Made by a program: the position numbers and the translations under genes
The notes under the pieces: model-generated
What the model was told of the DNA's origin: nothing
What the model saw: the letters and a program-made list of their open reading frames with translations, nothing else
Databases searched by the model: none
Assembly (NCBI RefSeq): GCF_964204645.1
Contig: NC_134032.1
Coordinates: 12,016,275-12,080,274 of the forward strand
Length of the DNA stretch: 64,000 bases
Direction of reading: 5' to 3'
Origin: Tubulanus polymorphus
Taxonomy: Eukaryota > Animalia > Nemertea
Part shown: in pieces, positions 1,854-34,200 of the stretch
Layout of the letters: every line of letters starts with the position of its first letter
Position numbering within the stretch: position 1 is the first letter of the stretch

Positions 1854-4800
1854 ATGGAAGGTTTACCTGTTTTACCCGGCAATAGTTTCAGAGATCCAAC
1901 GGTAAGTCTTCAGAAATTAAGTTTTTAGCAGATTCGATGAATCAAATTAAATCAAATTGAATTTTATTCCTTCTCTTTGACTGACTTCGTTCTTGTGATC
2001 TGTTCACTGATTGTTTTGACTCCCGCGTTCCACAAATGTAGTAATTTAATATGAATCTGGATCCTACCCCTTCCCCAGCCCAGGTAGGGCAGGAGGCCCT
2101 TGGTGTGGGTCGGTCAGTACTAACTAACTACATCATTCGCTGATGATGCACTGACACTGACTGTCGCTGTTTGTCTATGTAACAATGAATCTCGTCACTA
2201 CTATGCGCATGCGTGAAAGAATTGATTAAGGGTAAGATGATATAGAGGGGCTAGATGAAATAGATTTCATCAAACTTGCAGTTGCGTTCTGTGGCTCAGT
2301 GGGTAAAGCACTGGACCAGCGTTGGGCATAGATAGGACTATTTTTGGTAGTAGTCGAATGAAACACTCTAATCCGTGTACACTGTAGATAATCAATGAAG
2401 TCCCACAATTCAAATTTTATATGAAATGATTTATTAAAACGAAACCACAACATTTCGGCTGTCGGACTCCCGTAATCACAGCTATTTCACTCTGTTTACG
2501 GGCCCTGTAATTGAAGAGGCGGCCAAATTAATAAAGCCTGAATAACTTGTGCTTTGATTTGACCTGTTTGTACTTGTTGTGCGTATTGTTTTAGTTTCGC
2601 GAACTGTTACTTTCACAAGTCTTCGAAAGCCCGTCTAAACTAAGCTTACAATTAGGTTACCGGTACTAACTTATTCGGAATTGAATTTGCATTTTTCAGC
2701 AAACCAAATACCACCGATCTCAAACACTCGGATACAAGAATGGATATGCGTTGCCACGGTACCCGACAGTCGGAGTGGGCGGCGTCCCGCTACAGTATAA
2801 CCAAATCAGTCAACAGGAACTCGACGAATTAGCCAATTATCAACCGACTTTGACGTACGGACAGGCAAAACAAGCCCCGCCCGAGGATTTCGTACCCGCG
2901 CACGTCGCCTGGGATAAAAAGGTGCCGATTTCTCCTTTTCGATGTTTTAACTCTGAAATCGAATAAAGTCTAAAACAAGTTTTTTTTTCGTGATATTTCC
3001 TTTGATGTTTGCGTTGTCGCGATAATATGGAAGAAAGGAAAACAAGTCTGAACTTCTCCCCAGGGCCTGGTTCCATTGTTGTGAGTTAACTCAAGAGTTG
3101 AAATCTGGGTTCAGTTTCACAAAAAAAAATTAAACTCAAATTTTTGGTGTAATTGTTATGTTTTCAATGAGGACAACAATTCAAACTTAACCGTTTTAGG
3201 CTTGAACTTTTTCGTGAAACTGTCCCCGCGGGGCCGGTTGCGTAGTCATGGCTGGTCCCAGTTCATTTTCTATGTTTTGACTTTTTTACTCTTTGAGTCA
3301 AATTTGACTCAGAACTGTGGAACTGGATCCGGGACATTTTTATCTTTGAATGATTGATGTTTTTTTTTTTTGTAAAGGTTTTGATGTTCCACGGATATTT
3401 CAAGATGACCGTCCACGAATCGCCGGACGAATTTTATCGCGTTCGACCCGTGAAAATTTATTACTATCTCGAAGACGACAGCATCGCCGTCATCGAACCA
3501 AACGTCGAAAACAGCGGCATGCCACAAGGTGATAATAATTTAATCGAGTTTATGTATATTTCAAACGTAACATCTTATTTGCGAGACTTAAGATGAAATC
3601 AGTCACTTTCGAAGTTGTGATTGCTGGTGCCTCCTCTACTGGGACCAAGAATTTTTTCACGATTTATTTTGACCAAATCTGGTATTGGACCCAGTATTAT
3701 TTTTAAAGTTCGCTTGGCCAAAAACATTTCTCAGATTTTTGAATTTGATAAATGCCGAGTGAACTGGGCTTTTCTCCAATACTCAGTTTGTTTCTATACC
3801 ATGTGCATAAAACATTACATAAGAATATGAATGATTATGTAAGTAATATACTTTTTTATTATTTGGTTGGTAAATTTTGTTTGATTTTCTGATTGAGTGT
3901 CCCTTACAAACCCACCACACCTGCCGGGAGCGAAACAGGGGGTTTGATTTTGAAATCGGAAATCGAAGTACAGATATAGTTGTGTGATCGACCGGTCGAG
4001 TTTACATATTTTTTTGTTTAAATTACTTTTTTTAATGTACCAACTGGACAACTATTTCAATTATCATTTTTTTCTTTTTAATTTTCTCAAAGGTAAACTG
4101 ATAAAACGTCAGAGGCTGCCAAAGAACGATCAGGGAGATCACTGGCACTGGAAAGACATCAACTTACAGCAGAACGTTACGTTTTATGGCAAGATTTTCA
4201 GAGTAACAAACTGCGACCAGTTCACCCGCGTAAGTTCATTTTCAACACCAGGGGCCAGTTGCACAGTCGTGACTTAAGTCCAAAAGTGGTCTTAAATCTT
4301 AAGACTGGTCGTAAGTTGTAAGATTGGCTATAGAGCTAAGTTGGTCTTAGACTGGTCTTAAGTCTAAGCCATGACTATGCAACTGGCCCCATATGCTTTG
4401 AAGCTCTCATAATGTATCCACTAGCTGTGTTAAAATTTGAAGTTGTATCTCAATCTATCCGGATTGTGATCAGTTACTGCTCATGTTATTTTACCAGTTT
4501 CACAAAAAGGATTAAGGCCTAAATCGATTAAAGATAAAGTGAATTAATGAAGAAATTAAATCGATTGAGTCAAATCGTTTTGTGAAACTGGGCCCTGACA
4601 TGAAAAAATGTGAAATACTTGCAGTTCTTCTATCTGACCCCTGCTAAGTTATCAGTTTTAAAACTTTGCCTCTATCATAGAAAATTTATTGCGTATCAAT
4701 TGCTTAGACCCGATGATAATCAGATTTTAGCTATCAGGATTTCGTTCTTGGAATTTTCTAGGATTTCCTGGAAGCGGAGGGCATCATCGTGAACGACCCG

Positions 4801-17465: not shown

Positions 17466-20400
17466 ATGATGGCTACTTACGACATCGTTGATGAAGATCA
17501 AGTGAATTTACTGCAGCCGCAAACGTTGAGTATCGAATTACAAAAGAAAGCCTACATGGAACTGAACGAGAAAGCCGAATGGAGGTCGCGCGATATCCAG
17601 GCCTTGAGAGACATGGTCATCGCTCATCCGGGTTAGTATTGTATTGTAGGCTAACTAGGTTTCGATGAGCGTCTTGTAGGCTTAGATGATGTCCTTGGCT
17701 ACTGCACATAGTCATCTTTGCTTGCCAGGGTTTAATTGACAAATCTCATGCCAACACAAACCGTGGTCACAGTTCCTTTGTCAGTCTATAACACTGCCCA
17801 AGATTTCCTGGCTACCACCAGTCTATATATCTAGCCAATCTGCTGGTGAAAAACAACGCATCTGATTGGCTAGGTATGGACAGGTGGCCGCCCAACAGTG
17901 TGATGTGCCAATGAATCTTGGTCGGTGTAGTAGACTAATGGTCTGCGGCCAGGGTTTGTGTTGGCATGAGCCTCACTGGGAGACGATCAAACCTTGTCTA
18001 GCGAGCTCAGTATGCACAGTAGTGACACCTGGCGGTCCTCACTTGCCACAACCGGTATTTCTACATAGCGTCATTGTTGTCTTTCTATTGTAGGTCTAAC
18101 AGCTCGCACGGACGATGCATTTCTACTGCGCTTTCTTCGCGCTCGTAAATTCGACTACGACCGCGCATTCAAATTGCTCGTCAATCATTACAAAATTCAA
18201 AAGAAATATCCGGAAATTTATTCCGATTTCCGTCCATCGACCGTTAAACACGTATTCGACGACGGTATCGTGAACGTGCTTCCATCGCGAGACCGATTCG
18301 GCTGTCGGATTCTCGTTCAACGTCCCGGTGAGTTCAATAAGCTGCAACCAATCCTTATGGCAACCTGACTTGAGAGCATACAGGGTAGCCTCAATCAGTC
18401 AGTTTTGGTGGTACATATCTTATAAAAGTCTTATTAGGACCAGAATGCATTGGCAGTCGACCTAAATCATCATTTTTTAATCCATTTGAAACTGTATTGA
18501 AGGATATCCAAAAAATCTGAATTGAGAGGGGTTCCTGAGAGATTTGAAAGTTTAACAATATTTTTCCATGCCTACCAACTGAAATTTGATGCGTAGGCAT
18601 GGAAACATATTGTTAAACTTTCAAATCATGGAGTCACTTCTCTTCATTTAACCCCTTTCAGTGAAGACTCTTTGGATATCCTTCAATACAGTTTCAAATG
18701 GATTTAAGAATGATGATTTAGGTCGACTGCCTGTCCTTTCTGGTCCTTTTATCAGGTATGTACTACCAAAAATGACTGAGCTAGGCCACCTGGAATGCTC
18801 TCAAGTCAGATTGAAATAGACATTATTCAGTAACCTGTCTGTGGTTTAGTTTCACGATATTTCGGATATTTTCATAAACCACAGCCCATCCGATTATAAA
18901 AGCTTACCACTAATGATTAGGTAACTAATTACAACCATCCCTTACCCTCAAACATCAGGGATCAACATCTTGAACCAAAATGTCTACTGGAGGTGGTTGT
19001 TGTTCACATTCGTGAAAGGATATAACTTGTAAATATTCAAGCCTATTTCAGTCTTAATGGATTTCATAGAGCAGTGCTGCCAACTGTTCCTGAATTTCAA
19101 TATTGGTTACTATTATATAACCAGAAATACTGATTTGATGCATACAGAAATATGAAAGATGTTACTAAGGGTCTTACTGTTGATTACTGATTGATTTAAG
19201 CATGTTCTTTCATATTTCAATGAAATGTTACTGAAAATAGTTCAATTTGTAACTGATAGCAATTTTCAGCCCTGATAAAGGAAAACCCACGATATCAGTT
19301 CAACAAATATTGTTGTGTTCATATTCGAATGAACTCCTCAGAAGTTGAGTAGACGGATTCTACCCGAAACATAAGAAAAAGAAAACATTAACAGTTGTTT
19401 CAATTGATATTGTGGGGATGATATTCTCAGGATATTTCCGAAAGAGTCTGGATGAACAAAGTTATGATTTAGAAATAAGATTTCATCGAAAAATTGCAAC
19501 ATTTCGGATTCAAAATATGATGATTTATGTATGCAATAAATTGTTACAGGTTTATACGACGCTGTAAATATGCCGTACTCCGTAAATGATGCTTTTAAAG
19601 CGACTTTAATCACTTTGGAGAAACTAGTTGAGGTAGGTCGGATATAGGATCAGAGCGAAATCTACTGAGTCCAGATCCTCAATTAGCATTTGAAGTCGGA
19701 AGATTAATTGACTGAAAATATTAAAACCACTTCGAATTTGTTCAACTAAGACTCAGCTCACAGTTTCACTCATATTCTTGGTTTAGTTACTTTTTAACAA
19801 AAGCAACAATACGGTGGTCTCAGTAGCTGAGTGAGATAAGGTGTGATGCCGTCGTGAGGTTAAATGAATAATTCAATAGGGTGCGTCTTGGAAAACCAAG
19901 ATCTAAGCGACGTAAAGCCAAAACAAGCAATATACCTCACCTCCTTCAATAACCAGACCACGATTTAGTCAGTAACCTATCCGTGGTTTACTCGGTAACC
20001 TGTCTGGGGTTAATCAGTATAATCTGTCTGCAGTTTAGTTTCATAATCAGATATAACAACTCTTTGATATTCTAGCCTATTTAATTACAAAAGTTAAACG
20101 GTTAGCTACCCCCTCCTAGGCTTCACCACTCAAACGATATTTTCAATATTCAGGAGGAGGAGACTCAGATCAACGGTATTCAAGTGATAGTAGATTTGAC
20201 CGGGGTCGGATGGCCGTTAGCGAAATGCCTGGCGAGGTACAGCAGTCCGAGTATGATGGTGAATATTATGCAAGACGCGTTCCCGATGCGGGTTAAAGGC
20301 GTTCATCACATTCACGAACCGAAAGTTTTCGGTTATATATTCAACCTGATTAAACCGTTTCTCAAAGAGAAATTAGCAAAACGGGTAAGCCACCTTTGTG

Positions 20401-21495
20401 GAACCACCTGATGTCATCTGAATATGAATTAACCTTAACTGAAGAAGTTCCCTACTTATACACATCATCAAATAACTACATAGACTCTTGAGAAAATAAA
20501 GACCCCCATGATATCACTATCTTCATCAGATTTTTGTGAGGAGACATAGTTTGAGTTTGCACATTCCCAATAGGCAGGCGTTAAAACATCTAGTTACAAA
20601 ATTGTTTAAGTTAAGATAGTTGCCTAGCTGGTTGTGATATTTTGATTTTTACAAAAAAAATTCAGATTAAGTATTTACCTGTAGCCTGTTATTTGAATAA
20701 TAGTCATTTTGTTAACAAAATCTTGTTCTAAGAAAACTTGCCTAGTCCAATACCATATATACGGTACTCTCCATTGTAAGATCATGTACATAGTCTAGCG
20801 AAAATAGCTGTTTCAGTATATCTCCCTATGACATTATTAACTGCTGCGTTGATATCCTGTTAATGATCATTAATTTCTTTCAGATTCATTTTCACCGTTC
20901 CGACTTAGAGAAATGTTTTTACAACGAATTCCCGCGAGAGATTTTACCGAGAGACATTCAACTGGGAGGTTACTGCGACCCATTACCTTCACAGGTTAGT
21001 GTTGCTCTGAATAGGGGACTGATTCTGAATCTTGTTCTGAATAGGGCACCGATAGTTAACTACAGTTGATCAAACCTTGATTCTAACAAGTTCTTGAAAA
21101 AAAAATCTGGTTTAGTTGCACAGATGTATCATCAGTACGATAGTGTTTAGTTGTTATGAGCTGAGCAAAATAAGATGGAATTAAGTGAAAATCTGAATTC
21201 AAGATTGGAAAGATAAAATAGGAAATCACAGAATAAAGTTTGTTTTTGGTCGAGTTAGTCAAAGTGGAAGTTGGCCATTTCTAAGTTTACCGTACATACA
21301 AGTGTGTTGAATTACGCATTATATTTCTGTTCGCAGTGGTGGACTGATATCGTAATGGCTGCCGAAGAGGAATTCGAGGGCTACAAGAAACACTGTCTCG
21401 ACGAAGTTCGTTTGATGGAAGCGCCACCTACGACTGACGAGCTGACTCAATGCGGCGTCCTGATCGGTCCTTACATGAAATTACCCTCGTCTTGA
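17466..21495 (+). CDS. CRAL-TRIO lipid-binding protein (alpha-tocopherol transfer protein-like / clavesin-like), 6 coding exons
   Basis: KAYMELNEKAEWRSRDIQALRDMV, RTDDAFLLRFLRARKFDYDRAFKLL, LPSRDRFGCRIL, GLYDAVNMPYSVNDAFKATLITLEKLVE (~19550-19632), EEETQINGIQVIVDLTG...QDAFPMRVKGVHHIHEP...IKPFLKEKLAKR, IHFH...ILPRDIQLGG. Confidence 0.92.
18361..18813. mobile_element. Foldback/MITE, almost fully palindromic ~450 bp
   Basis: ~170-bp arms (CAACCTGACTTGAGAGCAT... / ...ATGCTCTCAAGTCAGATTG) around a central palindrome GATTTGAAAGTTTAACAATAT...ATATTGTTAAACTTTCAAATC. Confidence 0.8.
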
Positions 21496-22122
21496 CATCG
21501 CTCAATAGAAGGCGCTTTCGTATTGATGTATCCTTACTGGAAAGATGGCTGTCATAAAGTTGTCGATTCGATTGTTGACGTCATAGTGATTTCTGGAGGC
21601 GGCCATCTTTTCAAGAATAGGGTTTGGATGCAGATTCAAATGCAGCTTTGCTTAGCAACAACATGATTAACAGCAAGTTCTTCCAAAATTAATAATTGGT
21701 TATTTGATTACCCGGGTAGTTGTAATTAAGAAACTCAGTATTTCAATCGGTACCCAGTTCCACAGTTTCGAGCATCAGTTAAGCGAAAAAAGGTTAACTT
21801 ATCTGAATTTGAATTGAATATTCTAGGCAATAACAAAATGATACGTTGTTTTTTCCTAATCAGTCGGGTCGTATAATAAAATGCAATACAATTTGTAATC
21901 AGTTCATTTCTATAACTGTCGGGTCTGGTTAGCTTGATCGTGATTTAAAAAAAGTAATCTACAGGGTAGATAGGCGCCAACTTTTAAGCCCAGCAGAAAG
22001 GAGAAACAATTAGGGGATCAATTTTTTAGCCTTACTCCTTTCAGATCTTAACTCGAATACTGTGGAACCGTGGCCTTAGATTCTAGCTTTTTCTAGATTA
22101 TTATTATCAAGTGAAATCAATG

Positions 22123-22405
22123 CAGAAGCGGATCCAAGAGCGAGCTTTAGGGGATCTCGACCCCCCTTACTCTGTGTGCGAAAATTTTCTGATAGTGATT
22201 GATACTGATCATATTAATGATGAGACTAGAACCACAATTCAAATATTTATCGATCGCTATTTCGGCGTCTGCACACATTTTCGTGAATGAAATTCTCTTC
22301 TCAGGAGATTTATGCAATTTTCATCGAAACATGGAAGAATTAATTATATCTGAGAAACCACTGCACTTGACCCCCCTCTGCTCATATTTCTGGATCTGCT
22401 CCTGC
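22123..22405. mobile_element. Short non-autonomous DNA transposon (hAT-like ends)
   Basis: CAGAAGCGGATCCA ... TGGATCTGCTCCTG imperfect TIRs with G/C-run subtermini. Confidence 0.5.
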
Positions 22406-25400
22406 AACGCTTACATCGAAAGCAATATCCACACAGTTGCCTTATAGGAAGTTACTGGGGAACTAGTTTTAGACGCCTTCCATGTAAATCTGATAACCGT
22501 ATAAAGTGCAAAACAGAAGAAAATCAAATTTTCTTTGAACAACGAAATTGTTCTGACGAAAATCTCTAAAGATTTAAATGCATATATGTTTGATAAGAGA
22601 ATTGTGCATTCAAGAGAACTATTACTGAACAAGTCTTCGATAGTAGATATTAAGATCAAATCCTGATTACTTGTAGGTGTGATGGCATGATGTCTAGGAT
22701 TCTCCCCAAATCTGCCTCTGGGGTGGTCGACTTTTCTTCCACCCAGCAGAGCTTCCATCGGCAATATTTAAAATGAGATTTTATATATATTTTAACTATG
22801 TGTATAAACTAGGTATCTATATATTTTGATTGTTAATTTATGTGGTTTTATTCAAATTGTTAGTTCTATGTATGAACATGTATATATGTGTTTAAACAAA
22901 GTTTTATTTGAAACTACAACTGGGTACATTTCTAACCCTGTAATCACAGTCTTCAACATAAACAATTTTCTGTTCCCAACAAATAACTTGAATGTTTAGC
23001 CCCAAGTCAGCGTAGAATTTTAACAAGTCTGATCTTTACAACAGTTAGAGACTGAGTCTACGGCATTTCTTAAAACTCTTACTCAGTACAGTAATCCAGT
23101 ATTTGACACCAAGAAGCCAGGCTAGAATTTGAGCAGTCTTTTTGAACGAACTTCCAACCCAATTGAATAGATATTTATGTAAACATACAACGTATTTACC
23201 GATCAAAGAAGTTGCAATTTTAGCAGGTTTTCCTATCTCACTACAAGGACTAAAGATCTTGATGAATGTATTTTTGAATAATTCAATGGTTTATGAGTGA
23301 GAATTATATTTGTAAGCACATAATTGTTCCAACACAAAATATATTGCAAACGAAAAAATATATGCATCGAAATAAATATCTATTCTATCTATTCTAACGA
23401 AAACATGTTCTTTTCAAGCTTGTAAGTTTTCACCCCTCACTTGGTTTGTAGAAGTAAAGTTAAAGCTATAAGAAGCACATTTTCAGCTCATTTTGCGGAA
23501 CAAAACTTGCACTTTCTGCATATCATGATTGATTTGTCAAAATGAAAATTCGGAAGAAGTAAATTGGAATAACTTCTATTGGAAAGTGGCCTTAAAGTCA
23601 TAATTAAAAGAATAAGTTCATTAAATGAAGCGTTAACGTTGATGGAATTGGCGATTGAAACAACTCTGCCAGCCACCGCAAAAATAGCGATCTTGACCGT
23701 CTAGTGCTGTCGCCCATAGAGAGCGGGTAAAACGTGAACTAATGTCACATAACACTCGCTTACCAGTCTTTGGAAAGTAGTGGACAAACAATTTACCGAT
23801 TTGCGGGCTGGATTCCCGAAAAGGGGATTATCCTTTGGAGATGATTTGAGAAGAGTTACTGTCTGAGGGTTAATTTTCGAAGGGGTCTATTAAGGCTATT
23901 TTAGGAGTAATTGCCTAGGGGTGACTATGTCAATGACTCAGTGGAGTTGTAAAGGGACCGCTGGGGGGAGGCTCCGGCGCGGCGCCCAACCCCAACACAC
24001 AGTATTTAGTTAATAAAAACACTATTTCTCATCATGTTTCCATGTCACACATTTTCATTACCACGAAAATATTGTTTCGTTCGTAAAACGAGAGGCTGCG
24101 TAGTAACAATGAAGTATAAGCATGTTTTTAGTTATTCCGAAAACTACTGAATGCCTCTAAGATTTGAAGTATTAAAAACCCAGCACACTAGCATCGGCTA
24201 CGAAACATAGTTGCCCTATTTTTCTGCATCCCTTTGAAGAAATCTTACATTTGTGGATTTGAACGATTTTCGCGCACTTTAATTAGTACGTAGGATACTC
24301 TCGCAATTGCCTGAACAATAGTAACCACACGAAGCTAGGGCTGGTTAGAATCTACATGTTGTCAACATGTATGAACGACGCTACAATAATAAAACAAGAC
24401 GAATATAAGACGAACCATTACAAAACGACTACGAGTCTACGGCGCAACGAACATTCAAGAAACAGCTTGTTGATAGGGGATTACGACGACTTGAACAGGC
24501 ATCGCCGTTATATTTCCCTCTGGAGCTGGGGCAACATGCCTTTGCCAAGGTTCGTAGTTATTCGAAATATAATTTCTGAATCATATTATACAAAATGTAT
24601 ATTTCTACTTGACTTGAGAGGACGGGTAGCCTATAGCTCAGTCGATTTGATGGTAGGCCTGCATGTAAAAGTAAAGTGAAAGTCTTGACCAGGACGGCCT
24701 GCAACTGAACTAAAACATTGTTTTTACGGATTGCAAAAAAGTATTAATCGAAGAAGAAATGCTTGACTCCTTTGATTTGATTGTTCAACAATATGTTTCC
24801 ATGCCCGAATAGCATAGTATCATCGTGTTGAAACATTGTCGTTCGAAAAAGTTGACATTTTTTTCTGATAACAAGTACGTAAAGTGGTTACAATCACTAA
24901 TGTATTTCGTCTAGAATCGAGGGGAAGGTATGTCACTCTTATGCAGGTTAATTATATCTAATAAGTACTACTCATGCCTTATGTTGGTAAACATATATGT
25001 GTGTCTGCTGTTATTAGACTCACTGGATGGGGATGAGGACTCACGCAATTATTCATTTCTGACTCTCTGGTATCCCACTGTGGACTCTGGTATCCCTTGA
25101 CGACCATCAGCCTAACTGCCGGCATCCATAATCCAAAGATCAATATTACACATTGATGTACATGTGTCAGGCGAATTCCCGAACAATGGTGAATGGTTTT
25201 GATGAAAATATCATAAGAGTATATCAAATATCAGCAGGAGGCCGGCGGGCTACAAAAAGAACCACGGCGTGAAAAAAATTTTATAGATGGTTAGGTGAAA
25301 GTTTCTTAATTTAAATTTACACAGGATTTATACAAATCAATTATAACAGCGTTTAAACATGCGAATTTTCGCGTCCTTTGGGTCGCGGATTCAGTGGAGG

Positions 25401-26317
25401 CCCTCAAGCGGCCCGCCCCCCTCTTTTTGCCAAGGTAACATTTTGACAAACTGGCTTAAGAAAGTTACACATACACCGTGGCAAGTTATTGTCGGGTATC
25501 TTGTTCTAAAATCACTTAACACTTGCATATGCTCAGATCAGAAAATGATTCATTTTTCAAAATTTTTTGTGCATTAAATCATGATCAGTTTTACTATACT
25601 GGCAGTTATAGGAATGAGAAGATAACCAATTTCATTACATTTTACAAAATTAACTGGCCTATTTGGAGAAACAAAGGTATCATTTTTGTTTAGCCCAAAT
25701 GGAATACTTAGAATGAAAGTAAATTTTTATCAATCTCAAAATAGTTGAATGATTTTCTCTAGGTTTCTCAGTATGTGTTTATACCTCGCCTTTTTCTCTG
25801 TATGGGCAGATTTAGTGTGGTAGTGAAAACCCGGTGCATGAAATAAAACTTCCTTGTTCGTCTGGCGTCGGTTATTTATTGAACTTATTTCATGTCATTA
25901 GCATACGTACAGTTGACTAAAGCATTTTGTACAGGACATTCAGTTTTTTTTCGCGTGAATGGCGTAGATGTTACAAATTCAGCAAAAATAGAATCTGAAT
26001 GCTGAAAATATGAACAAGTATACAAAGTCATGATCGCTGTACTGTAAAGTACTGACCTGATGATATTCATATGTGTCGGATCAATATCAGAAACAAAAGC
26101 TCAGGAAGCCTTGTGTAAGTCTGATCTTTCGGAACCCGAAGAAAAATTATCCGACTTAGAAAAAGTCCGACTTTTGAATGGTAGGATTTCCGGCCTTTTT
26201 CGAAAACTACGACTTGAGAATCAATTTCTGTAAACGGAAAAATTAAAGCAGCATCTACAAGAAGTGATTTAAAAACATCTGACCGAAAAATCTTATATGC
26301 TATTGTATTATTTTTAG

Positions 26318-27329
26318 ATTCAACAAGTGGATTGTTCTAGCCACGTGCCTGGTTTTAACATTTATCATTTGCGGAATGATTAATAAAAAGAAGGGTGTGA
26401 AAATGCGTAGTGTAACCAAAATGATAGAAATGCAACGTGTAAGCAAGATGGAGAGGAAAGTAACCAAAATGATGGAGGGGAATAAAGTATCCAAAATGAC
26501 GGAGACACCGTCGACCAATAGTATGGGGTCTTTACGAGGTATCGAATTCGTTAAAAACAATGCCACATTATGTCGGGGAAACCCCAAAACAGTCGTCGTC
26601 ATCATATCACATTCGGATAACTACAAACAACGGCGGGCGATTCGTGCAACGTGGGGTAAATCGACGAGTGATATTCGGTATGTTTTCTTGCTGGGATTAT
26701 CGCCGGGTCAACGCAGGGAAAAGATCGCGACCGCCGAAGTGGATACACACGGCGATATCGTGCAGATGAATATGGTGGAAATGTATTACAGACTGACGAT
26801 GAAATCGGGGGCTATGGTGAAATGGGTTAATGAATTTTGCCGACACGTGAAATACGTCATCAAAATTGACGATGACATGTATTTAGACGCCGGGCAGTAT
26901 ACGTCGGCGTTAGATGCGCGCGCCGGTCATAATGCATATTTATTGTGTTACTTGGTGAGGAATCCGGGTGTTAACAGAAATCCTAAAAGTAAATTTTATG
27001 TCAGTCGGGAGGATTGGCCGTCATCACGTTTCCCGAATTATTGTTCCGGTACCGGGTACGGTTTCACGGCGAAAATAATTCCCGATATGTGGAAAACGGC
27101 TCTAGAAACTAAACTGATGAACAACGAAGACGTCTGGTTAACGGGTGTTGTAGTTAGTAAAATGAAAGGTGTAAAACGAATTGACGATCGTCGCATCAAT
27201 TTGACATCTCGCGCGAGGAACTGGTGCGAATCGAAAGATTACATTACGACGCACAGACTAAGCCCTCAAAATCTGATGGATATATGGAAAGATAAATTAT
27301 CCGGGAAGACTTGCCCTCCGAAAAAGTAA
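26318..27329 (+). CDS. Beta-1,3-galactosyltransferase (GT31 family), type II membrane protein; the short first coding exon upstream is not firmly located
   Basis: After acceptor ttttag (26317) the frame reads FNKWIVLATCLVLTFIICG (TM), then RRAIRATWG, VFLLG, HGDIVQ, LTMKS, YVIKIDDDMY, SKFYVS...FPNYCSGTGY, NEDVWLTG. A candidate M-V-R micro-exon (ATG 25287, weak donor) is unconfirmed. Confidence 0.92.
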
Positions 27330-27960
27330 CATAGAAACCTAGATTTCTCTCGTCACACCGTGTGCCTTATTTCTATTTTCAGCAAAGTAAGAACGAAAGA
27401 ATATTGTCCCTAGAATACAGTAATGTTGATGTAGAGGCAATTATGGTGGTATGAAGATAATACATATCATCAAAAATTAAAGTGGTCCTAATGGATTTTA
27501 GATTTTAGATTTATAGATACATATATCGGAATTTTCCGAGGGCACCGTCGAGAATCCGATAGATCATAAAATAATCCCCTTTTCCTAATCTTCGTTCCAA
27601 ACAAGAAAATTATATAACCTAATAGTTAATTGACGCCTCGAAGAATAACACTGCTTTAGGTAATATTATTGACAATGTATATATGATATCATTTTAATAT
27701 AAATTATATAATGAAAAGGATCATGAAAGTTATTTTGGATTTGAATTTACCCATGTATCGATGGCCGGCAACCAGTCTCACGAGATAATCATTAAAAATC
27801 AATCATAAGTAACACATATTGACAAGAATGGATAATATTGAGGATCGATAAAGCTATATTGGATTTTGAGGAAATCGTAGACCGCTTGCCGCTTCACTCC
27901 GTCGATTATCACGCACGTGGTACAAACCCGGAACTGCTGCAACTCAAACCCACAGGGACT

Positions 27961-28034
27961 CGTATTTGAAGTTTGGGGTGAACTGTAGCTTAGATCATCC
28001 AGTATCTCTGGTACTAAAAAAAATATATCTTTAT

Positions 28035-28101
<67 letters not shown>

Positions 28102-28155
28102 TACCAGGGATACTGGATGATCTAAGCTACAGTTCATCCCCAAACTTCAAATACG
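27961..28155. repeat. 55-bp inverted repeat enclosing a (TA)~31 microsatellite
   Basis: Arms 27961-28015 and 28100-28155 are near-perfect reverse complements. TA run ~28038-28099. Confidence 0.9.
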
Positions 28156-28526
28156 TGGCCACTGTGCTCAAAACGCCAATCGATTGCCAGTTGTCCGGGC
28201 TCAGCTTAGTGAGTTCGAATCCCTTTGCGGGTGATGAAAGAGCGATTTGGGCTCGGTGGCACTAGCGCCAGCGTTGGTTAAATAAAAATGTCATGTGGCT
28301 GTCAGCAATTTCTAGGGGCAGTCTAATTGGGCTGCAGATCAATATGACAGAGTGGTTCCTTTATCAGAATCCTCCCTTGTTCCTACAGAATCTTTCGGAT
28401 GATCGGAAACTAGGTGGAGAAGCAGAAACTAAATCAAGATCAAAATTTCCAGGGATCACAGATGTTATTCTTTATTCTCCATAAAACAAAACAGTTTGAG
28501 AAATCTATTTTCTTATTCAGAGAAAT

Positions 28527-30897
28527 TTACTGCTGTTCACCGCTGGGCATACTTCTAATGATATCACTGTCACCTGTAAATATACAAATAGAATTGACAT
28601 TAGAACAAAATGGATACATCCGGCACTACTTAAACCCCACCTTCCCTGGAATACACAACAGGAACCTCGTTAATTTCTATATTCAGTTCATGGTTTATAT
28701 TCTCAGAAAGATTTAGGTATACATCATCTATTATCAGGCGAAAGATGGTGATTTTGTCTTTCATCATAGAAATATCTTAAACATAACTATTAAAGCTATA
28801 TGTTTTTCATTTTAAATAAGCCTTCATACAATATAAACCAAGCAGGAAACCAATCCAAGGAGAGCAGAAACGGAGGATAAGCCAAGTCTATCCCGGTTCT
28901 GTCTGTTGCTATTCAAATGATTTAAGGTTTCAATGACTAAACTACCGGATCCTGGTGTCAAAAGAGCAGAGGAATAATTTCCCTCGTATAAACGTAACTC
29001 AGACAGAGGTTCGAAATAAAGGATTTTCTTCATAAGAAATAATCGTAACATATTGTCATCATTGTCACTGGTGGAAAAGAATAACACAGGTCGGCCACTT
29101 ATTTCGACTTGCGTAATCCAGGCTTGAACCAATCGATTAACAGTCACATACGTATGACTCAAAACAGAAATTGTTTGTTTTTACACGCGATCTAGCTATT
29201 CCCAAATATCTACGACCTTTTAATTGGGGATCGTTCATTTATTACATATGCATTAGGGGAGGGGTCAGTGCAATTGCGTACTGGGGTGAAAAAGTCAAAT
29301 TTCATGCGTACGCAATAAATGAATGATCCCTTAAGGAAAAGAATTTTCCCAGCTATAACAGTGGCCAGCCTGTATCATTCACAACTGAGATACTGAATCA
29401 TGGTTCAAAAGTGAACGAATAACGTTTCAGATTGTAGCTATGCAACGTGCTGACTGGTTTATCAGTGAAACCAGCAGCATAGCGAGCACAGCCGAGTTTA
29501 ATATCCACAAATGGGAAACGACGACCGAATCACGAAATTGAGACACCGGTCGTAGCTGATTTGTGGAGATTCGACGCGGACGTACGGAATCTCAAAACAT
29601 ACCTGGATCAGTGATGCTGAGCACGCAAACGCGGAAGTATTTACCGCACGACGTTCCCAAATCGATGTTATTGCCGTTGTAATGATGAACGCCGGTCTTC
29701 GCCAACATAGCGTAATATTCGATCTCACTCTTCCTACAAACGGACAAAAAAAAAACCACATCATTCACCATCAGCATCAGAAATAAGCTTTTTTCTAAAC
29801 CCTGTAAGAAACAATCGCGTCATCTACAATTTTGATAAATCTCTGGCACAGACGAGTCCTATTGAAGAGGATTGTCTCGGATATCTTTCAACTTACATCA
29901 GAGAACTGAAACGTGAAATCGCGGGGACACACAATGGACTGGCGGCAATAAACCAGGCTATATAACTATGTGTCTGTTACATGACTTTCTTATTCTTACC
30001 TCTCACCCTGTTCAACTGTGAAACATAAAACAAATTTTTGCATGAAAATGTTCAACGGACTTCATCTTTACCCCAATCTGGGAGCTCCGAAGCCTTTCTA
30101 CGAATACACTTCTTTCTTGTCTACTTTTTTAATTTATCTTCAATTACAGTATAACCCTACACAACTCTTGACCCAGTTCAACGCCTACCTCAAGTAACGA
30201 TTGGCCTCCAATAAAAATTCCCGAGTCCATAATTTAGTAACCGGGCCCAGGGAACTGTATCTTACCAACCACACCAAAAGAATCTTGAAACTGAACATAC
30301 CTTAAAGGTGGGGTGTTGTTAGCGATGATGACAAGTTTAGCTTTTCCTTGACGCAGAGTCTTCAGGGTCTGTTTGTAACCGAGCACGTACTTGCCACTTT
30401 TCATTACCAACGCCAAACGAGAGTTGATGCTCTCGATGGACTTTTTCTGGAAGAATAAAAAAGACGAATGTTATCAACTCCCCGAGCAAACCCATGATTA
30501 GCCAGCAGGAAACAATTGAGTCCGTTGCGCAGGTCTCAACAAATCGAGGGTAAATCATAGGGCTTAGTATATGAACATAACCACACACTTAAAACTGCAG
30601 TCACTAGAATTGATTTAAAAATTTAGTGTAGCCTCATATTAGCGGGGTTATCCTCATTTCAAACCTTTTTACAGGTCGAAAATTGGTGTAAGCTTGACTA
30701 GATTTGTTAATCATAGGCTCAAATCACTTTAGCTGAAGCCACCACATGATTAAAGCTTCCTTTTTCTAATTAAAATATTAAGCGAATAGGAATACAGGTA
30801 ATTAAGTTTATGTTCAATCGAGTATCATTTTGTTTTCTTAGATCAACCGACCGAAATAGGAATTTAAAATCCTTACCGATTTCTTGGTTGGTGCCAT
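28527..30897 (-). CDS. RPL30: 60S ribosomal protein L30 (eL30)
   Basis: Coding exons 30877-30897 (MAPTKKS), 30301-30446 ([29 protein letters not shown]...NNTPPLR), 29603-29733 ([35 protein letters not shown]...DP), 28527-28573 ([15 protein letters not shown]). Non-coding exon ~31063-31097 begins with a pyrimidine TOP-like tract. Confidence 0.98.
28697..28775 (-). ncRNA. SNORD51: Box C/D snoRNA, U51/U32A (yeast snR39/snR59)-like, guide for 28S Am (human Am1511 equivalent)
   Basis: Minus strand: ATATTTCT-ATGATGA(C)-AAGACAAAA-TCACCATCTTTCG-C-CTGA(D')-TAATAG-ATGATG(C')-...-CTGA(D)-GAATAT, with a terminal stem. The 13-nt guide is complementary to conserved LSU CGAAAGAUGGUGA, and the D'+5 rule gives the second A. 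Confidence 0.88.
28994..29068 (-). ncRNA. Box C/D snoRNA with 12-nt complementarity to 18S rRNA (CAGAGGUUCGAA)
   Basis: Terminal stem GTGAC/GTTAC, box C ATGATGA (29056-29062), box D CTGA (28999-29002), 75 nt. Guide TTCGAACCTCTG (29004-29015) lies just upstream of box D. Confidence 0.75.
29226..29335. mobile_element. ~105-bp MITE (Kolobok-like, TTAA-associated); related fragment ~45995
   Basis: GGGATCGTTCATTTATT ... AATAAATGAATGATCCC followed by TTAA. GGGCCATTCATTTATTGCGTAC recurs at ~45995. Confidence 0.6.
29430..29569 (-). ncRNA. Box H/ACA snoRNA with two 28S-complementary pseudouridylation pockets
   Basis: Hairpin 1: TCCACAAAT/ATTTGTGGA and ACGACCG/CGGTCGT. H box ATATTA (29499-29504). Hairpin 2: GCTGTGC/GCATAGC and CTGGTTT/AAACCAG. 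ACA at 29433-29435, 3 nt from the end. ~140 nt. Confidence 0.88.
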
Positions 30898-31084
30898 TTT
30901 ATTTCGTCTTTTTCTCTTCTAATTCGACGTCAAATTATACTGAAATTTAAAAGAGAAGGAACTATTAATATGAACATTATTTCAGTTGTACAAATTTATA
31001 AATTGACACGATAGTTTTCGAGATGAAAGCGGATAAATATCGGGACGAAAATTCAAACACACCTTGACTCAACGTCCACGTTAG

Positions 31085-31256
31085 CTGCAAAGGGATGAGG
31101 ATACGTCACTTCCGACGAGATTGGAGTTGAGTTCCCGCGAGATCTCGCCGCAACATATTTGTTTAAAGATGGCCGCCAGCGACTGACATTCCATCGGAAT
31201 TTCCAAAATTGCGGCAAATTTTATCGAAAAATCGACTCCGAAGGTGACCGTTCACG
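31085..31256. promoter_or_regulatory. Bidirectional RPL30/WDR35 promoter
   Basis: TCT/TOP-like CATCCCTTTG on the minus strand (~31088-31097), ETS-CRE CGGAAGTGACGT (31103-31114, minus), TCCCGCGAGA (31133-31142), YY1-like AAGATGGCCGCC (31166-31177). WDR35 ATG at 31257. Confidence 0.75.
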
Positions 31257-34200
31257 ATGTTTATCTATCTCAGTAAAAAGGTCAGTTGTTGAAGATCTAT
31301 TTCTGCATAAATATTTAATCATTATTTTAGTTTCTCTATGTTTAAACGGCTAAAATTCCGATCTTTATTTACTTCCGGGTTCTCTAAAATCGCACTATTT
31401 ACCGAAAAGACCTGTCGAAGTCGTGTTATACGTCAGTTCTTTTTAAAAATGACTTTGACAAAAAAACTTATTAGTGGGTGCCACTTAATTATCTATGCAA
31501 TATGCTTGCTTGATAAAAGGTCTGTGTGATTCACCTAAAATCCGGGCTAATAATTGAATAAAAAAAGTAAAATGATGAAATGTTAAAACTACGGTACCTT
31601 CCTTGAAGGGTACTCTGTAGAAAAAACTTTTGGTAAACACCCTCGATAAATTCCTGCTAAATAGAAAGTAGAGTTAGGATTCCAAAAAACTAAGTTGTTT
31701 TAGCCCGTTTGATGGGGCTACCCCTAGAGGCCTAATTGCATACATCCTCGCTTGTCAGGTTTTGATTGCTGTAGTATTTATAGAGCAAAAGTCTGGACGG
31801 TAAAAACCGCATCTGATTGGCTAGATATATAGACAGGTGGGCGCTTTGTGGGAACTGTCCGCCCAAGAAGTCTTGGGAGGATGATTGCATATACAGTTTA
31901 CCATTATTCTAATACTTACTACACGCAAGATTTCATGTTTGCCAAGTGCGCCACCTTTTTGCCCGTTATGAAACTCGTATGGATTTTAATTTATAGATCG
32001 CAATTCCGAACAACACGAGATTACGATGTTTATCGTGGAACGGGGAACACGGTTTCATCGCGTGCGGAGGCGAGGACGGCCTGTTGAAAGTTCTCAAATT
32101 AGAAACGCAGCCGGGCAAAGATTCGAAAGCGAAAGGGCTCGCCGCTCCGAGCAACCTGTCGATGAACCAAACGCTCGAAGGGCACAGTGGTAAGTGAGGA
32201 ATTCGCGAATATGAAAATACGCTTAAAAATCTAATAATGAAAAATTGAGTCTGAAATGTCTCCTTGAGTTAACAGTTCATTCCTTGTTTCGACTATATCC
32301 TAATACAGGGGTCCATATGACTCCGTGACATGTTAAAAACTTCTTCTTAACAGAAAATCCTTTTTAAGTTTCTTGAAACTCCTTTCATTTGAGCAAATTG
32401 CTCATAGCTCCTTCAATTTTGAGAAATAGGCAATGAGAAAATTTTGTCTAGTTTGTACAGTAAACTATTCCTAAATCAGTACAGTCACGATCAGGACTTG
32501 TGTTAAAGGGGGTTGCTGGCCGACAAACCGAGTTTCGGTAGTGTTAGGATAAAAGTTATTTTCAAAACCCCTGAGTTAATGGTTTACCGAGGTAAACAGT
32601 ATCAGTTTAGGAGGAGTCTACTATAATTAGGTTGTGAATGTGATACATGTACAGTGAGATGTTTCCTCGAAATTTCAAATTTTCTCTTTTAAAAACTCCT
32701 TGTATCCAGCAATGACTGATCTGTAGGGAGCCTGTTAACTATTAACTCAAAACAAAAAGATTTTGAATTTTTCATCATTAGTGTGTGGGATTTTTACCAT
32801 ATCATGGTTTCAACACGGATAGAATGTTTCATCGAGTAGGCCTATAAAAATTATATGCATAAAAAGAAAAATTTCAAAGATTTTTTTTTTGATGATTTTC
32901 AGGCGCAGTACAGGTGGTCACTTGGAATGAGCATCATCAAAAGTTAACGACCAGTGATCAGTATGGATTGATTATAGTCTGGATGCTTTATAAGGGTAAT
33001 CGGGTTTTTTAATGACCTAGAATAAGCCTCTTTGAGGAATACGCCGTATATTCTAATCGTATGATTTTATTCGTTCAGGTTCGTGGTACGAAGAGATGAT
33101 AAACAATCGTAACAAATCGGTCGTACGCAGCATGTCGTGGAATTCGGAGGGTCAGAAAATCTGCATCGTTTACGAAGACGGTAAGATTGATCGGCAGTTC
33201 GAACGATTCACTATAATTCAACTCTGATTTAACAGCTATCTACTAGAGGGGCTCAGTGTTCTCTGAGGCGTTTTTGTCTAGATGTTGATTTGTCAAATCA
33301 ATTTACCAAAGTAAATTCTGCGCATTTATCTACTCGATTTATCAAATTGATTCGGCTAATCAATGCATTTATTTAAATGATTACTCAAATCGATTTGATA
33401 AATCAAGCAAATTGCTAGTGGAGCGATTTGCTTGATTTGTCGAACTGATTTGAGTAGATTTACATGGAGAGTAAAGATGGCGGAAAAGAATCAGCAGGTC
33501 TCCCAGCACTGGTTGCTAATCCACGCGTTTATCTAACTTCAAATCGATTTATGAAATCAGCGAAACTAGTGGATCTGTAAATCCAAGGCGATTTGCTTGG
33601 ATAAAAACGCTTAGGTTTTAGAGGGCCGGCCACCCCTTTAATTTTTACATGCACCCAGTCTAAAAATCAGCCACCCCTTATAAGATATCTGCTGCCCCTA
33701 CCAGAGTGGATGTCAATATTCTATCAATGGTGATAATTGCTTTGAAGTCTATTGAGCTAATGTGATGAATAGAAGATTACGCCGAAATAAATAATTTTCA
33801 ATTTTTTTGGGGTGGAGATCGAAAGCCTTGCTACTTCAGCAGCCACAATGTTATACACTTAACGATGAATGCAGCCCCTTTAAAATTCCTGGAGCACATT
33901 GGTCGCTCTGTTTACCCGGACCCAGTTCCATAGTTTATGTTCAAGATTTTACTCTAGGTTTAACCCTTTCATGTTGCTAGTATAACACATTTTAATGTAA
34001 ACTCACCCTCAATTGATAACGATTGGTGGTATTCCAGTTGAAGATTGCAATTTCATGATTAACAGAAATCGATACAAGGGAAAAGGGGTGTATAAAAAAC
34101 CTAGCTCGGGCAGGAAATTACATGTATTATAATGTTAAAACATTGAAAATGACTTAGGCTTCTCGTGTATTAATTTGACAGGAGCGGTTATCGTCGGTTC

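Follow-up and report, generated by a model that had tools for sequence, protein, structure and literature searches.

Introns with several snoRNA genes in other organisms

In the textbook view, animal intronic snoRNAs are matured by splicing, debranching and exonucleolytic trimming, a route that can free only one RNA per intron. The polycistronic snoRNAs of plants and yeast are cut by an endonuclease and then trimmed by exonucleases, and the same is presumed for the intronic clusters of Drosophila. Animal introns mostly hold a single snoRNA, and two snoRNPs on one excised intron stall the exonucleases and give a joined sno-lncRNA unless the intron is cut between them (PMC11028025, PMC4233238). 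The preliminary description of the DNA studied here had assumed one snoRNA per vertebrate intron and extra cleavage otherwise, which agrees with both papers.

Intronic snoRNA gene clusters are known in rice, Arabidopsis and Drosophila (PMC2780460, PMC2875012 and PMC3089462), and it was in rice that this type of organisation received its name (PMC2780460). The Arabidopsis clusters include those in RPL34 and in a gene of the L7Ae/L30e family (PMC2875012). Like the intron described below, intron 4 of RPL30 in the ribbon worm Tubulanus polymorphus, the rice and Arabidopsis introns hold several host-sense snoRNAs each, often within a protein-coding host related to translation. The plant RNAs are released from a common precursor. 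The RPL30 intron belongs to an animal host, and a processing route can only be proposed for it. Moreover, the intronic clusters listed for Arabidopsis mainly repeat a single snoRNA in tandem variants, while the three RNAs predicted in RPL30 are unrelated and belong to two classes.

Drosophila, with several snoRNAs per host intron, is an animal exception of the same kind (PMC2246290 and PMC3089462). Its clusters are described as H/ACA, in contrast to the one H/ACA and two C/D RNAs, all without paralogues, of RPL30 intron 4; in this insect, H/ACA genes on the flanks of C/D genes are said to be 'not common' (PMC5932544). The mammalian sno-lncRNAs (SLERT, LNC-SNO49AB and those of 15q11-13) likewise come from excised introns with more than one snoRNA, on which the core proteins stop the exonucleases (PMC11028025). 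They are joined lncRNAs with ends of like class, whereas the predicted ends in RPL30 intron 4 differ in class and enclose a third snoRNA. In the genome of T. polymorphus itself, a fibrillarin intron also holds two C/D RNAs. The RPL30 arrangement is less exceptional because of this second intron and of the clusters known in rice, Arabidopsis and Drosophila.

The RPL30 gene and its fourth intron

The window, a stretch of 64,000 nucleotides, carries on its minus strand a gene identified as eL30/RPL30 by the reading frames of the exons flanking the intron. The translation of exons 4 and 5 gives the conserved ...SITDPG/DSDIIRSMP..., with the intron at the slash. Intron 4 is the last intron of the gene. 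The coding frame sets its boundaries, together with its conserved position, which is also present in the RPL30 loci of several other animals. The upstream edge of exon 4 was set by an RNA contig junction (29732/30300). The features are listed in the order of transcription of the host gene.

29603-29733, minus strand: RPL30 exon 4, 83-93% identical to many eL30 proteins carrying PF01248
28574-29602, minus strand: RPL30 (eL30) intron 4, GT..AG, 1029 nt, phase 1, between codons ...DPG and DSD...
29430-29569, minus strand: predicted box H/ACA snoRNA, H box ATATTA at 29499-29504, ACA at 29433-29435, three nucleotides ahead of the 3' end
29227-29333, no strand assigned: palindromic, MITE-like repeat of high copy number in the first spacer (H/ACA RNA to C/D RNA 'A'), a long hairpin as RNA
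28994-29068, minus strand: predicted box C/D snoRNA 'A', C box ATGATGA at 29056-29062, D box CTGA at 28999-29002, 5-bp terminal stem
28697-28775, minus strand: predicted box C/D snoRNA 'B', C box at 28761-28767, D' box at 28734-28737, C' box at 28722-28726, D box at 28703-28706
28527-28573, minus strand: coding part of RPL30 exon 5 up to the stop, placed by translation, with a C-terminal motif also present in relatives

The preliminary description had placed three sense-oriented snoRNAs of two classes at these positions in one RPL30 intron of about 1 kb, and their boxes, stems and guides confirm it. Intron 4 thus holds three predicted host-sense snoRNA genes with no exon seen between them, which is the organisation of an intronic snoRNA gene cluster (two or more such genes in one intron). 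We regard it as probable that intron 4 is a heterogeneous cluster of this type, made up of predicted genes whose RNAs are released by cleavage in the spacers followed by trimming. The spacers measure 361 nt (H/ACA RNA to C/D RNA 'A') and 218 nt ('A' to 'B'). All three predicted snoRNAs are single-copy in the genome (268 Mb) and have no paralogues. The intron 4 sequence of the second haplotype differs by 13 SNPs and one 13-nt deletion; only two of the SNPs fall within snoRNAs, both at linker positions, and none lies in the H/ACA RNA.

Candidate C/D guides were defined as at least 10 nt directly upstream of a D or D' box, with the target opposite the fifth nucleotide from the box, and candidate H/ACA pockets as lying some 14-16 nt away from the H box or the ACA. 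The C/D scanner, applied to 128 kb (the window on both strands), returned 'A' and 'B' as its only strong matches, and the H/ACA scanner, applied to the RPL30 gene, returned 29430-29569 as its sole hit. The Rfam search proposed in the preliminary description had a divided outcome: at the curated gathering thresholds there was no match in the whole window, but a permissive search gave 45.6 bits for snoMe28S-Am982, and all family leads presented here come from such permissive searches. The rRNA positions follow our own numbering, and their equivalence with yeast and human sites is partly presumed. Taken individually, the predicted guides have ordinary, conserved functions.

The H/ACA RNA

The RNA at 29430-29569 has the layout of the H/ACA class (hairpin-hinge-hairpin-tail), with an H box of the ANANNA type in the hinge, a correctly positioned ACA and bipartite pockets around an unpaired U-N. 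Its fold has an energy of -53 kcal/mol (z -6.4), equalled by none of 200 shuffles. The 5' pocket (pocket 1) pairs with 7+6 bp around 28S U3602, 16 nt from the H box, and the 3' pocket (pocket 2) with 5+7 bp around 28S U3501, where stem and pocket take up the 13 nt ahead of the ACA. The observed rRNA match was reached by 4 of 1000 shuffles of pocket 1 and by 49 of 1000 shuffles of pocket 2, so that pocket 2 on its own beats the shuffles just modestly. The RNA would pseudouridylate both uridines, which lie in the peptidyl-transferase region of the 28S rRNA.

Among the Rfam models, searched against 171 nt, snoR136 (RF02410) scored 29 bits (E 0.0024), short of its gathering score of 43, and the alignment is good just for the 3' hairpin and its pocket. 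We take the sequence context of the 5' pocket target to be that of the yeast snR37/psi2944 site. This yeast site has been equated with human U4521/SNORA10 (bioRxiv 10.64898/2026.03.20.713187), and snoR136 is assigned to 25S-2833, with E3 as its human equivalent (PMC2875012). The predicted RNA therefore resembles plant snoR136 and human E3 in its 3' pocket, and yeast snR37 and human SNORA10 in its 5' target context, although the host genes differ. Furthermore, the E3 and SNORA10 functions are carried by separate RNAs in human, according to these papers, whereas both are found here on one predicted RNA.

The C/D RNAs

Both C/D RNAs have the boxes (RUGAUGA for C towards the 5' end, CUGA for D towards the 3' end), the terminal stem and the guide geometry of their class, whose members are stable RNAs of about 70-90 nt that bind fibrillarin, Nop56, Nop58 and Snu13. 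In 'B', the C box reads ATGATGA, the D box reads CTGA and the terminal stem has 6 bp. Its D' guide (28739-28751) forms a 13-bp Watson-Crick pairing that targets 28S A1112, which the RNA would methylate; no shuffle out of 1000 matched rRNA equally well, and the guide together with its D' box has a single occurrence in the 268-Mb genome. The model of snoMe28S-Am982 (RF00535) aligned with 'B' over its full length (E 1.1e-5), the score of 45.6 bits being below the gathering score of 49. As 'B' carries the consensus D' guide of this family, it may be seen as a near-threshold functional equivalent of snoMe28S-Am982, slightly short of formal membership and placed in a different host gene.

The D guide of 'A' (29004-29016) pairs with 18S rRNA over 13 bp, including one G-U pair, with A1074 opposite the fifth nucleotide upstream of the D box, and 'A' would 2'-O-methylate this position. 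The target context is presumably that of the SNORD59 site, 18S A1031. SNORD59 guides A1031 of human 18S rRNA (table in PMC12288042). The SNORD59/U59/Z159 model (RF00160) gave only 12.4 bits (E 7.7) with 'A', which is below the gathering threshold and has another host gene.

The features of 'A' bear on the alternative that at least one of the three RNAs, most likely this one, is the remnant of a decayed snoRNA or resembles a snoRNA by chance, leaving one or two functional snoRNAs. 'A' has no significant match to an Rfam family (only weak, generic C/D matches, the best at 20.7 bits), its C' and D' boxes are degenerate, its rRNA match was equalled by 5 of 1000 guide shuffles, and it has no counterpart in the fetched RPL30 loci, among which no ribbon worm was recognised. 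On the other hand, its C and D boxes are perfect, a terminal stem is present, the target A lies exactly 5 nt from the D box and falls within a universally conserved stretch of 18S rRNA, and the haplotype SNP in 'A' spares both the boxes and the guide. Six other genome matches to TTCGAACCTC...CTGA were fetched, none of which has a C box, and no second locus was found with both the guide and the C box. We consider this alternative rather unlikely, and 'A' is treated below as one of three predicted snoRNAs.

Proposed release of the RNAs from intron 4

From the sequence we infer the expression of the three RNAs, the rRNA modifications and the entire processing route. The RNAs would be transcribed within the RPL30 pre-mRNA, and all three would mature from intron 4. 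Core proteins would assemble on each RNA, whether on the pre-mRNA itself or once the intron has been spliced out and debranched. Both spacers (361 and 218 nt) would be cut by an endonuclease, and exonucleases working in the 5'-3' and 3'-5' directions would then trim the fragments to the protected ends. At least some animals beyond Drosophila would thus need an extra cutting step, because three single-copy guides are spliced out as one piece and the layout recurs in the genome; the two C/D RNAs of the fibrillarin intron make a general route for multi-snoRNA introns likely.

The preliminary description had interpreted the locus as requiring either extra cuts or hidden exons. The logic of extra cleavage stands in the light of the literature, but the splice candidates and the hairpin on which the interpretation also drew do not rise above chance. 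According to the hidden-exon version, splicing within the 1029-nt intron (acceptor 28952, donors 29151 and 28829) would isolate each snoRNA in unproductive RPL30 isoforms, so that ordinary exonucleolytic release would suffice, as in human multi-snoRNA hosts coupled to NMD. A good polypyrimidine/CAG acceptor is present 42 nt past 'A', hexamers GTATGT and GTATGA occur in the two spacers, and human multi-snoRNA host genes are extensively alternatively spliced (PMC4233238). However, donor-like hexamers number 2 against 2.3 expected from shuffles, and acceptor-like sites 2 (29281 and 29068) against 1.9 expected, by a crude rule that misses both 28952 and the real acceptor. The exon-side context of the candidate donors is poor (TAC and ATT before the cut). 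Moreover, the exon that would result (28951-28830, 122 nt) shifts the frame into the last exon with no upstream stop and is not a typical NMD substrate, and the productive mRNA still removes the three predicted RNAs as a single piece.

The assembled contigs of the RNA-containing runs are of limited weight for this question. One contig from an RNA run is colinear with the genome over 28547-29276 with no internal joint, and no junction within intron 4 was found in RNA-containing contigs, but the constitutive junction of exons 4 and 5 is missing from them as well, so that this absence says little. Run X2 clearly contains RNA, as its contigs cross the intron-3 junction at a depth of about 22,800, whereas the one run tentatively labelled as RNA (X5) yielded nothing. 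Coverage of the exons is enough to account for the contig depths of 3097 for exon 4 with the H/ACA region and 39 for the remainder of the intron. Overall, release through hidden exons is decidedly unlikely, and we favour cleavage in the spacers.

Apart from the incidental hairpin of the repeat, folding of the spacers and the 3' flank gave no significant structure as a possible mark for cleavage. The hairpin reported at about 28865-28900 in the preliminary description proved not significant (z -1.5, equalled by 16 of 200 shuffles). The repeat at 29227-29333 folds with -36.2 kcal/mol (z -7.9), and its summed contig depth was 18,000-33,000, against about 30x for the other contigs of that run.

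The lack of an evident cleavage signal in the spacers is consistent with an outcome in which no internal cut takes place. The end-trimmed intron would then be a stable sno-lncRNA of about 870 nt, with the H/ACA snoRNP at the 5' end, the 'B' snoRNP at the 3' end and 'A' inside, and few or no free snoRNAs would be made. In mammals, two snoRNAs in a common intron do give rise to sno-lncRNAs such as SLERT and LNC-SNO49AB (PMC11028025). Nevertheless, no second copy of any of the three guides was found in the genome and their targets are widely conserved modification sites, so free functional snoRNPs are to be expected; the single-copy guides thus argue for free snoRNAs rather than a joined lncRNA. 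The recurrence of a multi-snoRNA intron in the fibrillarin gene also suggests a productive arrangement. We therefore hold the joined RNA to be very improbable and release by cleavage in the spacers to be the better reading.

More broadly, it is possible, and we propose it only tentatively, that ribbon worms, and perhaps other spiralians, routinely carry unrelated snoRNAs of both classes in single introns of protein-coding genes, with either endonucleolytic release or a new sno-lncRNA as the consequence. If so, this endonucleolytic release from animal introns would be comparable to the RNase III route of plants and yeast; the repeat hairpin in the first spacer could then be an accidental entry site for RNase III. 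The other outcome would be a sno-lncRNA of a new type, H/ACA at its 5' end and C/D at its 3' end. A text search of the literature for snoRNA and Nemertea returned incidental mentions only, and the ribbon-worm snoRNA literature is essentially nil. RPL30 intron 4 is a compact, testable substrate for the cutting step, with three different protected ends and two spacers in 1 kb.

RPL30 loci in other animals

Relatives of the RPL30 gene were found by a word search with the exon-4 peptide and by a search of metagenome contigs with the exon-3 peptide. BLAST, guide-motif, C/D-scanner and pocket-pattern searches showed the three guides to be absent from these loci (L007-L090 and L106-L109), among which no ribbon worm was recognised. 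In some invertebrate contigs, the position of intron 4 is occupied by a single C/D RNA unlike 'A' and 'B'. In a vertebrate-like contig (L042), taken to be from a non-human vertebrate because its C-terminus differs from the human one, the intron between DPG and DSD holds SNORA72 (121.9 bits). The vertebrate RPL30/SNORA72 locus has the host gene, the intron position and an H/ACA content in common with the ribbon-worm locus, but carries one snoRNA in the intron against the three predicted here. The H/ACA RNA of T. polymorphus was considered as a SNORA72 homologue and rejected, as there is no homology in sequence or pockets. The ancient intron position of RPL30 shows a turnover of snoRNAs, holding SNORA72, one C/D RNA or, in the ribbon worm, three predicted RNAs.

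RPL30 gene structure and the limits of intron 4

Reading of the sequence assigned the region to eL30 (RPL30), which is encoded on the minus strand, with the following exons:

near 31100, minus strand: 5′ UTR exon
near 30900, minus strand: start-codon exon
30301-30446, minus strand: exon 3
29603-29733, minus strand: exon 4
from 28573, minus strand: exon 5

The gene was searched one exon at a time, and the exon-4 peptide showed 83-93% identity to many PF01248 proteins. The exon 3-exon 4 junction (29732/30300) was seen in the RNA-containing run. Exon 4 closes with the residues ...SITDPG and exon 5 opens with DSDIIRSMP, and intron 4 occupies exactly 28574-29602, beginning with GTATGT and ending with TTTACAG; the limits proposed in the preliminary description are thus exact. 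An intron is present at the same codon position in the RPL30 loci of several other animals and has been lost in many.

Two observations concern the upstream part of the gene. One contig (depth 22) of the sequencing run X3 lacked 229 nt within 30225-30455, including the entire exon 3, with non-canonical ends (TC..GA); an artefact of assembly or a rare deletion allele is the probable cause. For intron 3 (29734-30300), the contig of the RNA-containing run reached a depth of about 390, whereas the 3′ part of intron 4 stood at 39, which might mean intron-3 retention, contig depths being unreliable.

Three snoRNAs of two classes

Boxes, folds, rRNA guides and the intron limits confirmed the earlier observation that three snoRNAs of two classes share this single RPL30 intron:

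29430-29569, minus strand: box H/ACA snoRNA (fold, boxes, rRNA pockets)
28994-29068, minus strand: box C/D snoRNA 'A' (boxes, stem, D guide)
28697-28775, minus strand: box C/D snoRNA 'B' (boxes, D′ guide, Rfam)

The H/ACA RNA adopts a predicted two-hairpin fold (-53 kcal/mol, z -6.4), with ATATTA in the hinge and ACA 3 nt from the 3′ end. Guides were matched to the rRNA of this same genome, whose own numbering is used here. The 5′ pocket pairs by 7+6 bp around LSU U3602, in a context which we take to be that of yeast psi2944. The latter is made by snR37 in yeast and has been equated with human U4521/SNORA10 (2026 preprint, bioRxiv 10.64898/2026.03.20.713187). The 3′ pocket pairs by 5+7 bp around LSU U3501, and in a permissive Rfam search this hairpin and its pocket aligned to plant snoR136 with 29 bits. 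The Arabidopsis snoR136 pocket has been assigned to 25S-2833, and its human equivalent is given as E3 (PMC2875012). The H/ACA RNA thus appears to unite two guide functions which in human belong to different RNAs, E3 and SNORA10.

In C/D 'A' the C and D boxes are perfect and the terminal stem has 5 bp; Rfam yielded only weak generic C/D matches. The D guide of this RNA pairs over 13 bp and brings 18S A1074 to the fifth position, presumably in the context of the SNORD59 site. SNORD59 has been assigned to A1031 (PMC12288042). In C/D 'B' boxes C, D′, C′ and D were all found, and the D′ guide forms 13 Watson-Crick pairs with 28S rRNA around A1112. This RNA scored 45.6 bits against snoMe28S-Am982, below the gathering score of 49, with a guide identical to the consensus.

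One main rival reading is that one of the three snoRNAs is non-functional. Shuffled guides equalled the observed rRNA match in 5 of 1000 cases for C/D 'A' and in 0 of 1000 for C/D 'B'; for shuffled H/ACA pockets the counts were 4 (pocket 1) and 49 (pocket 2) per 1000. A simple C/D scanner (boxes, stem and guide score of at least 10), applied to both strands of the 64-kb window, returned four matches, and only the two intron RNAs combined a canonical C box with a score of 12-13. The simple H/ACA scanner found 29569-29430 as the sole match in the whole RPL30 gene. Each of the three RNAs is single-copy in the 268-Mb assembly; the C/D 'B' guide with its D′ box occurs once genome-wide, and none of six further fetched sequences matching the shorter pattern of C/D 'A' has a C box. 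Another haplotype, seen in a DNA run, differs in intron 4 at 13 positions and by a 13-nt deletion. Two differences fall inside snoRNAs, both at linker positions, and none in the H/ACA RNA, which is consistent with constraint on the snoRNAs, the numbers being too small for a test. The deletion polymorphism (28784-28796) stops 7 nt short of C/D 'B' on its upstream side; indels are tolerated in the spacer as far as the edge of this RNA.

Spacers and proposed release from the intron

The H/ACA RNA starts 33 nt from the 5′ splice site, the spacers between the snoRNAs measure 361 nt and 218 nt, and 123 nt separate the end of C/D 'B' from the 3′ splice site. Within the first spacer, 29227-29333 is a palindromic, very high-copy repeat with a predicted long hairpin (about -36 kcal/mol, z -7.9); its summed contig depth was 18,000-33,000, whereas other contigs of that run were near 30x. 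Folding revealed no structure in the other spacer segments. The repeat is MITE-like, with terminal inverted repeats, and many contigs continue into unlike sequence at its edges.

The preliminary description had argued that such an intron needs extra cuts or hidden exons, and this logic is sound; the internal splice sites and the hairpin offered for it are at chance level. Donor-like hexamers (GT[AG][AT]G[TA]) numbered 2 in intron 4 against 2.3 expected from shuffles, both with poor exon-side context. Acceptor-like sites under a crude rule also numbered 2 (29281 and 29068), against 1.9 expected, although this rule scores neither the suggested 28952 site nor the real acceptor. The putative exon 28951-28830 would have 122 nt and frameshift into the last exon, and the hairpin at 28865-28900 was no better than shuffles. 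Hidden exons, a main rival, are further, though weakly, disfavoured by the RNA-containing run, where no joint internal to intron 4 was listed, though the constitutive exon 4-exon 5 joint was absent too and contigs drop rare forms. One contig of this run is continuous from 28547 to 29276; contig depths cannot reveal snoRNA accumulation.

Another main rival is a joined sno-lncRNA: two snoRNAs in one intron yield sno-lncRNAs, since the bound proteins halt exonucleases (PMC11028025; PMC4233238). We favour, with moderate confidence, an RPL30 intron cluster released via its spacers: cleavage there, followed by trimming, would free the three snoRNAs.

Shortly beyond the 3′ end of RPL30, at 27953-28163, inverted repeats of about 35 nt enclose a long (TA)n tract. 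Both strands matched several models of plant microRNA precursors at sub-threshold scores, and the element is most likely a further foldback repeat and not a microRNA.

Comparison with other loci and known clusters

RPL30 loci were taken from public assemblies and metagenomes. None of the loci L007-L090 and L106-L109, among which no ribbon worm was recognised, carried the three guides or pockets. In the invertebrate contigs with the most similar exon 3 (98%), the orthologous intron between DPG and DSD is about 220-230 nt long and carries a single C/D RNA, different from those described above, whose D′ guide can form 13 bp with 18S near position 1422:

L007:6291-6368: single different C/D snoRNA, orthologous intron
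L012:6089-6166: single different C/D snoRNA, orthologous intron
L011:2730-2808: single different C/D snoRNA, orthologous intron

This RNA occurs in two versions, with the guide kept and the flanks differing. In a vertebrate-like metagenome contig (L042:3098-3232), SNORA72 (121.9 bits) occupies the same intron position. As this position holds a different C/D RNA, SNORA72 or three RNAs, it seems to have hosted snoRNAs for a long time, with turnover of its content. The H/ACA RNA was also considered as a SNORA72 homologue, which was rejected as the comparison showed no homology.

Intronic snoRNA clusters are known from Arabidopsis ribosomal protein genes (PMC2875012), and RPL30 intron 4 is a further example of this organisation. 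Drosophila clusters are H/ACA clusters, while silkworm has one snoRNA per intron (PMC3089462), and H/ACA genes adjoining C/D genes are uncommon in Drosophila (PMC5932544); unlike the Drosophila clusters, RPL30 intron 4 mixes H/ACA with C/D. What sets the cluster apart is that its three guides are unrelated, single-copy and of two classes, that the host is a protein-coding gene for a ribosomal protein, and that it comes from a phylum, Nemertea, for which a text search returned only incidental mentions of snoRNAs. The locus is a small animal system in which the processing of multi-snoRNA introns could be examined.

Multi-snoRNA introns are not a one-off in this animal, since two C/D candidates share an intron of its fibrillarin gene. 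The interval L105:3867-4516 (contig C6), about 650 nt between the exon that closes with ...VISIK and the one after it, contains them at 3906-3963 and 4379-4436. Their guides, of 11 and 12 bp, are both directed at one 18S site (own position 103); Rfam gave no match in this interval. Weaker H/ACA-like candidates were seen in two other introns of this gene (L105 2943-3099 and 3350-3513).
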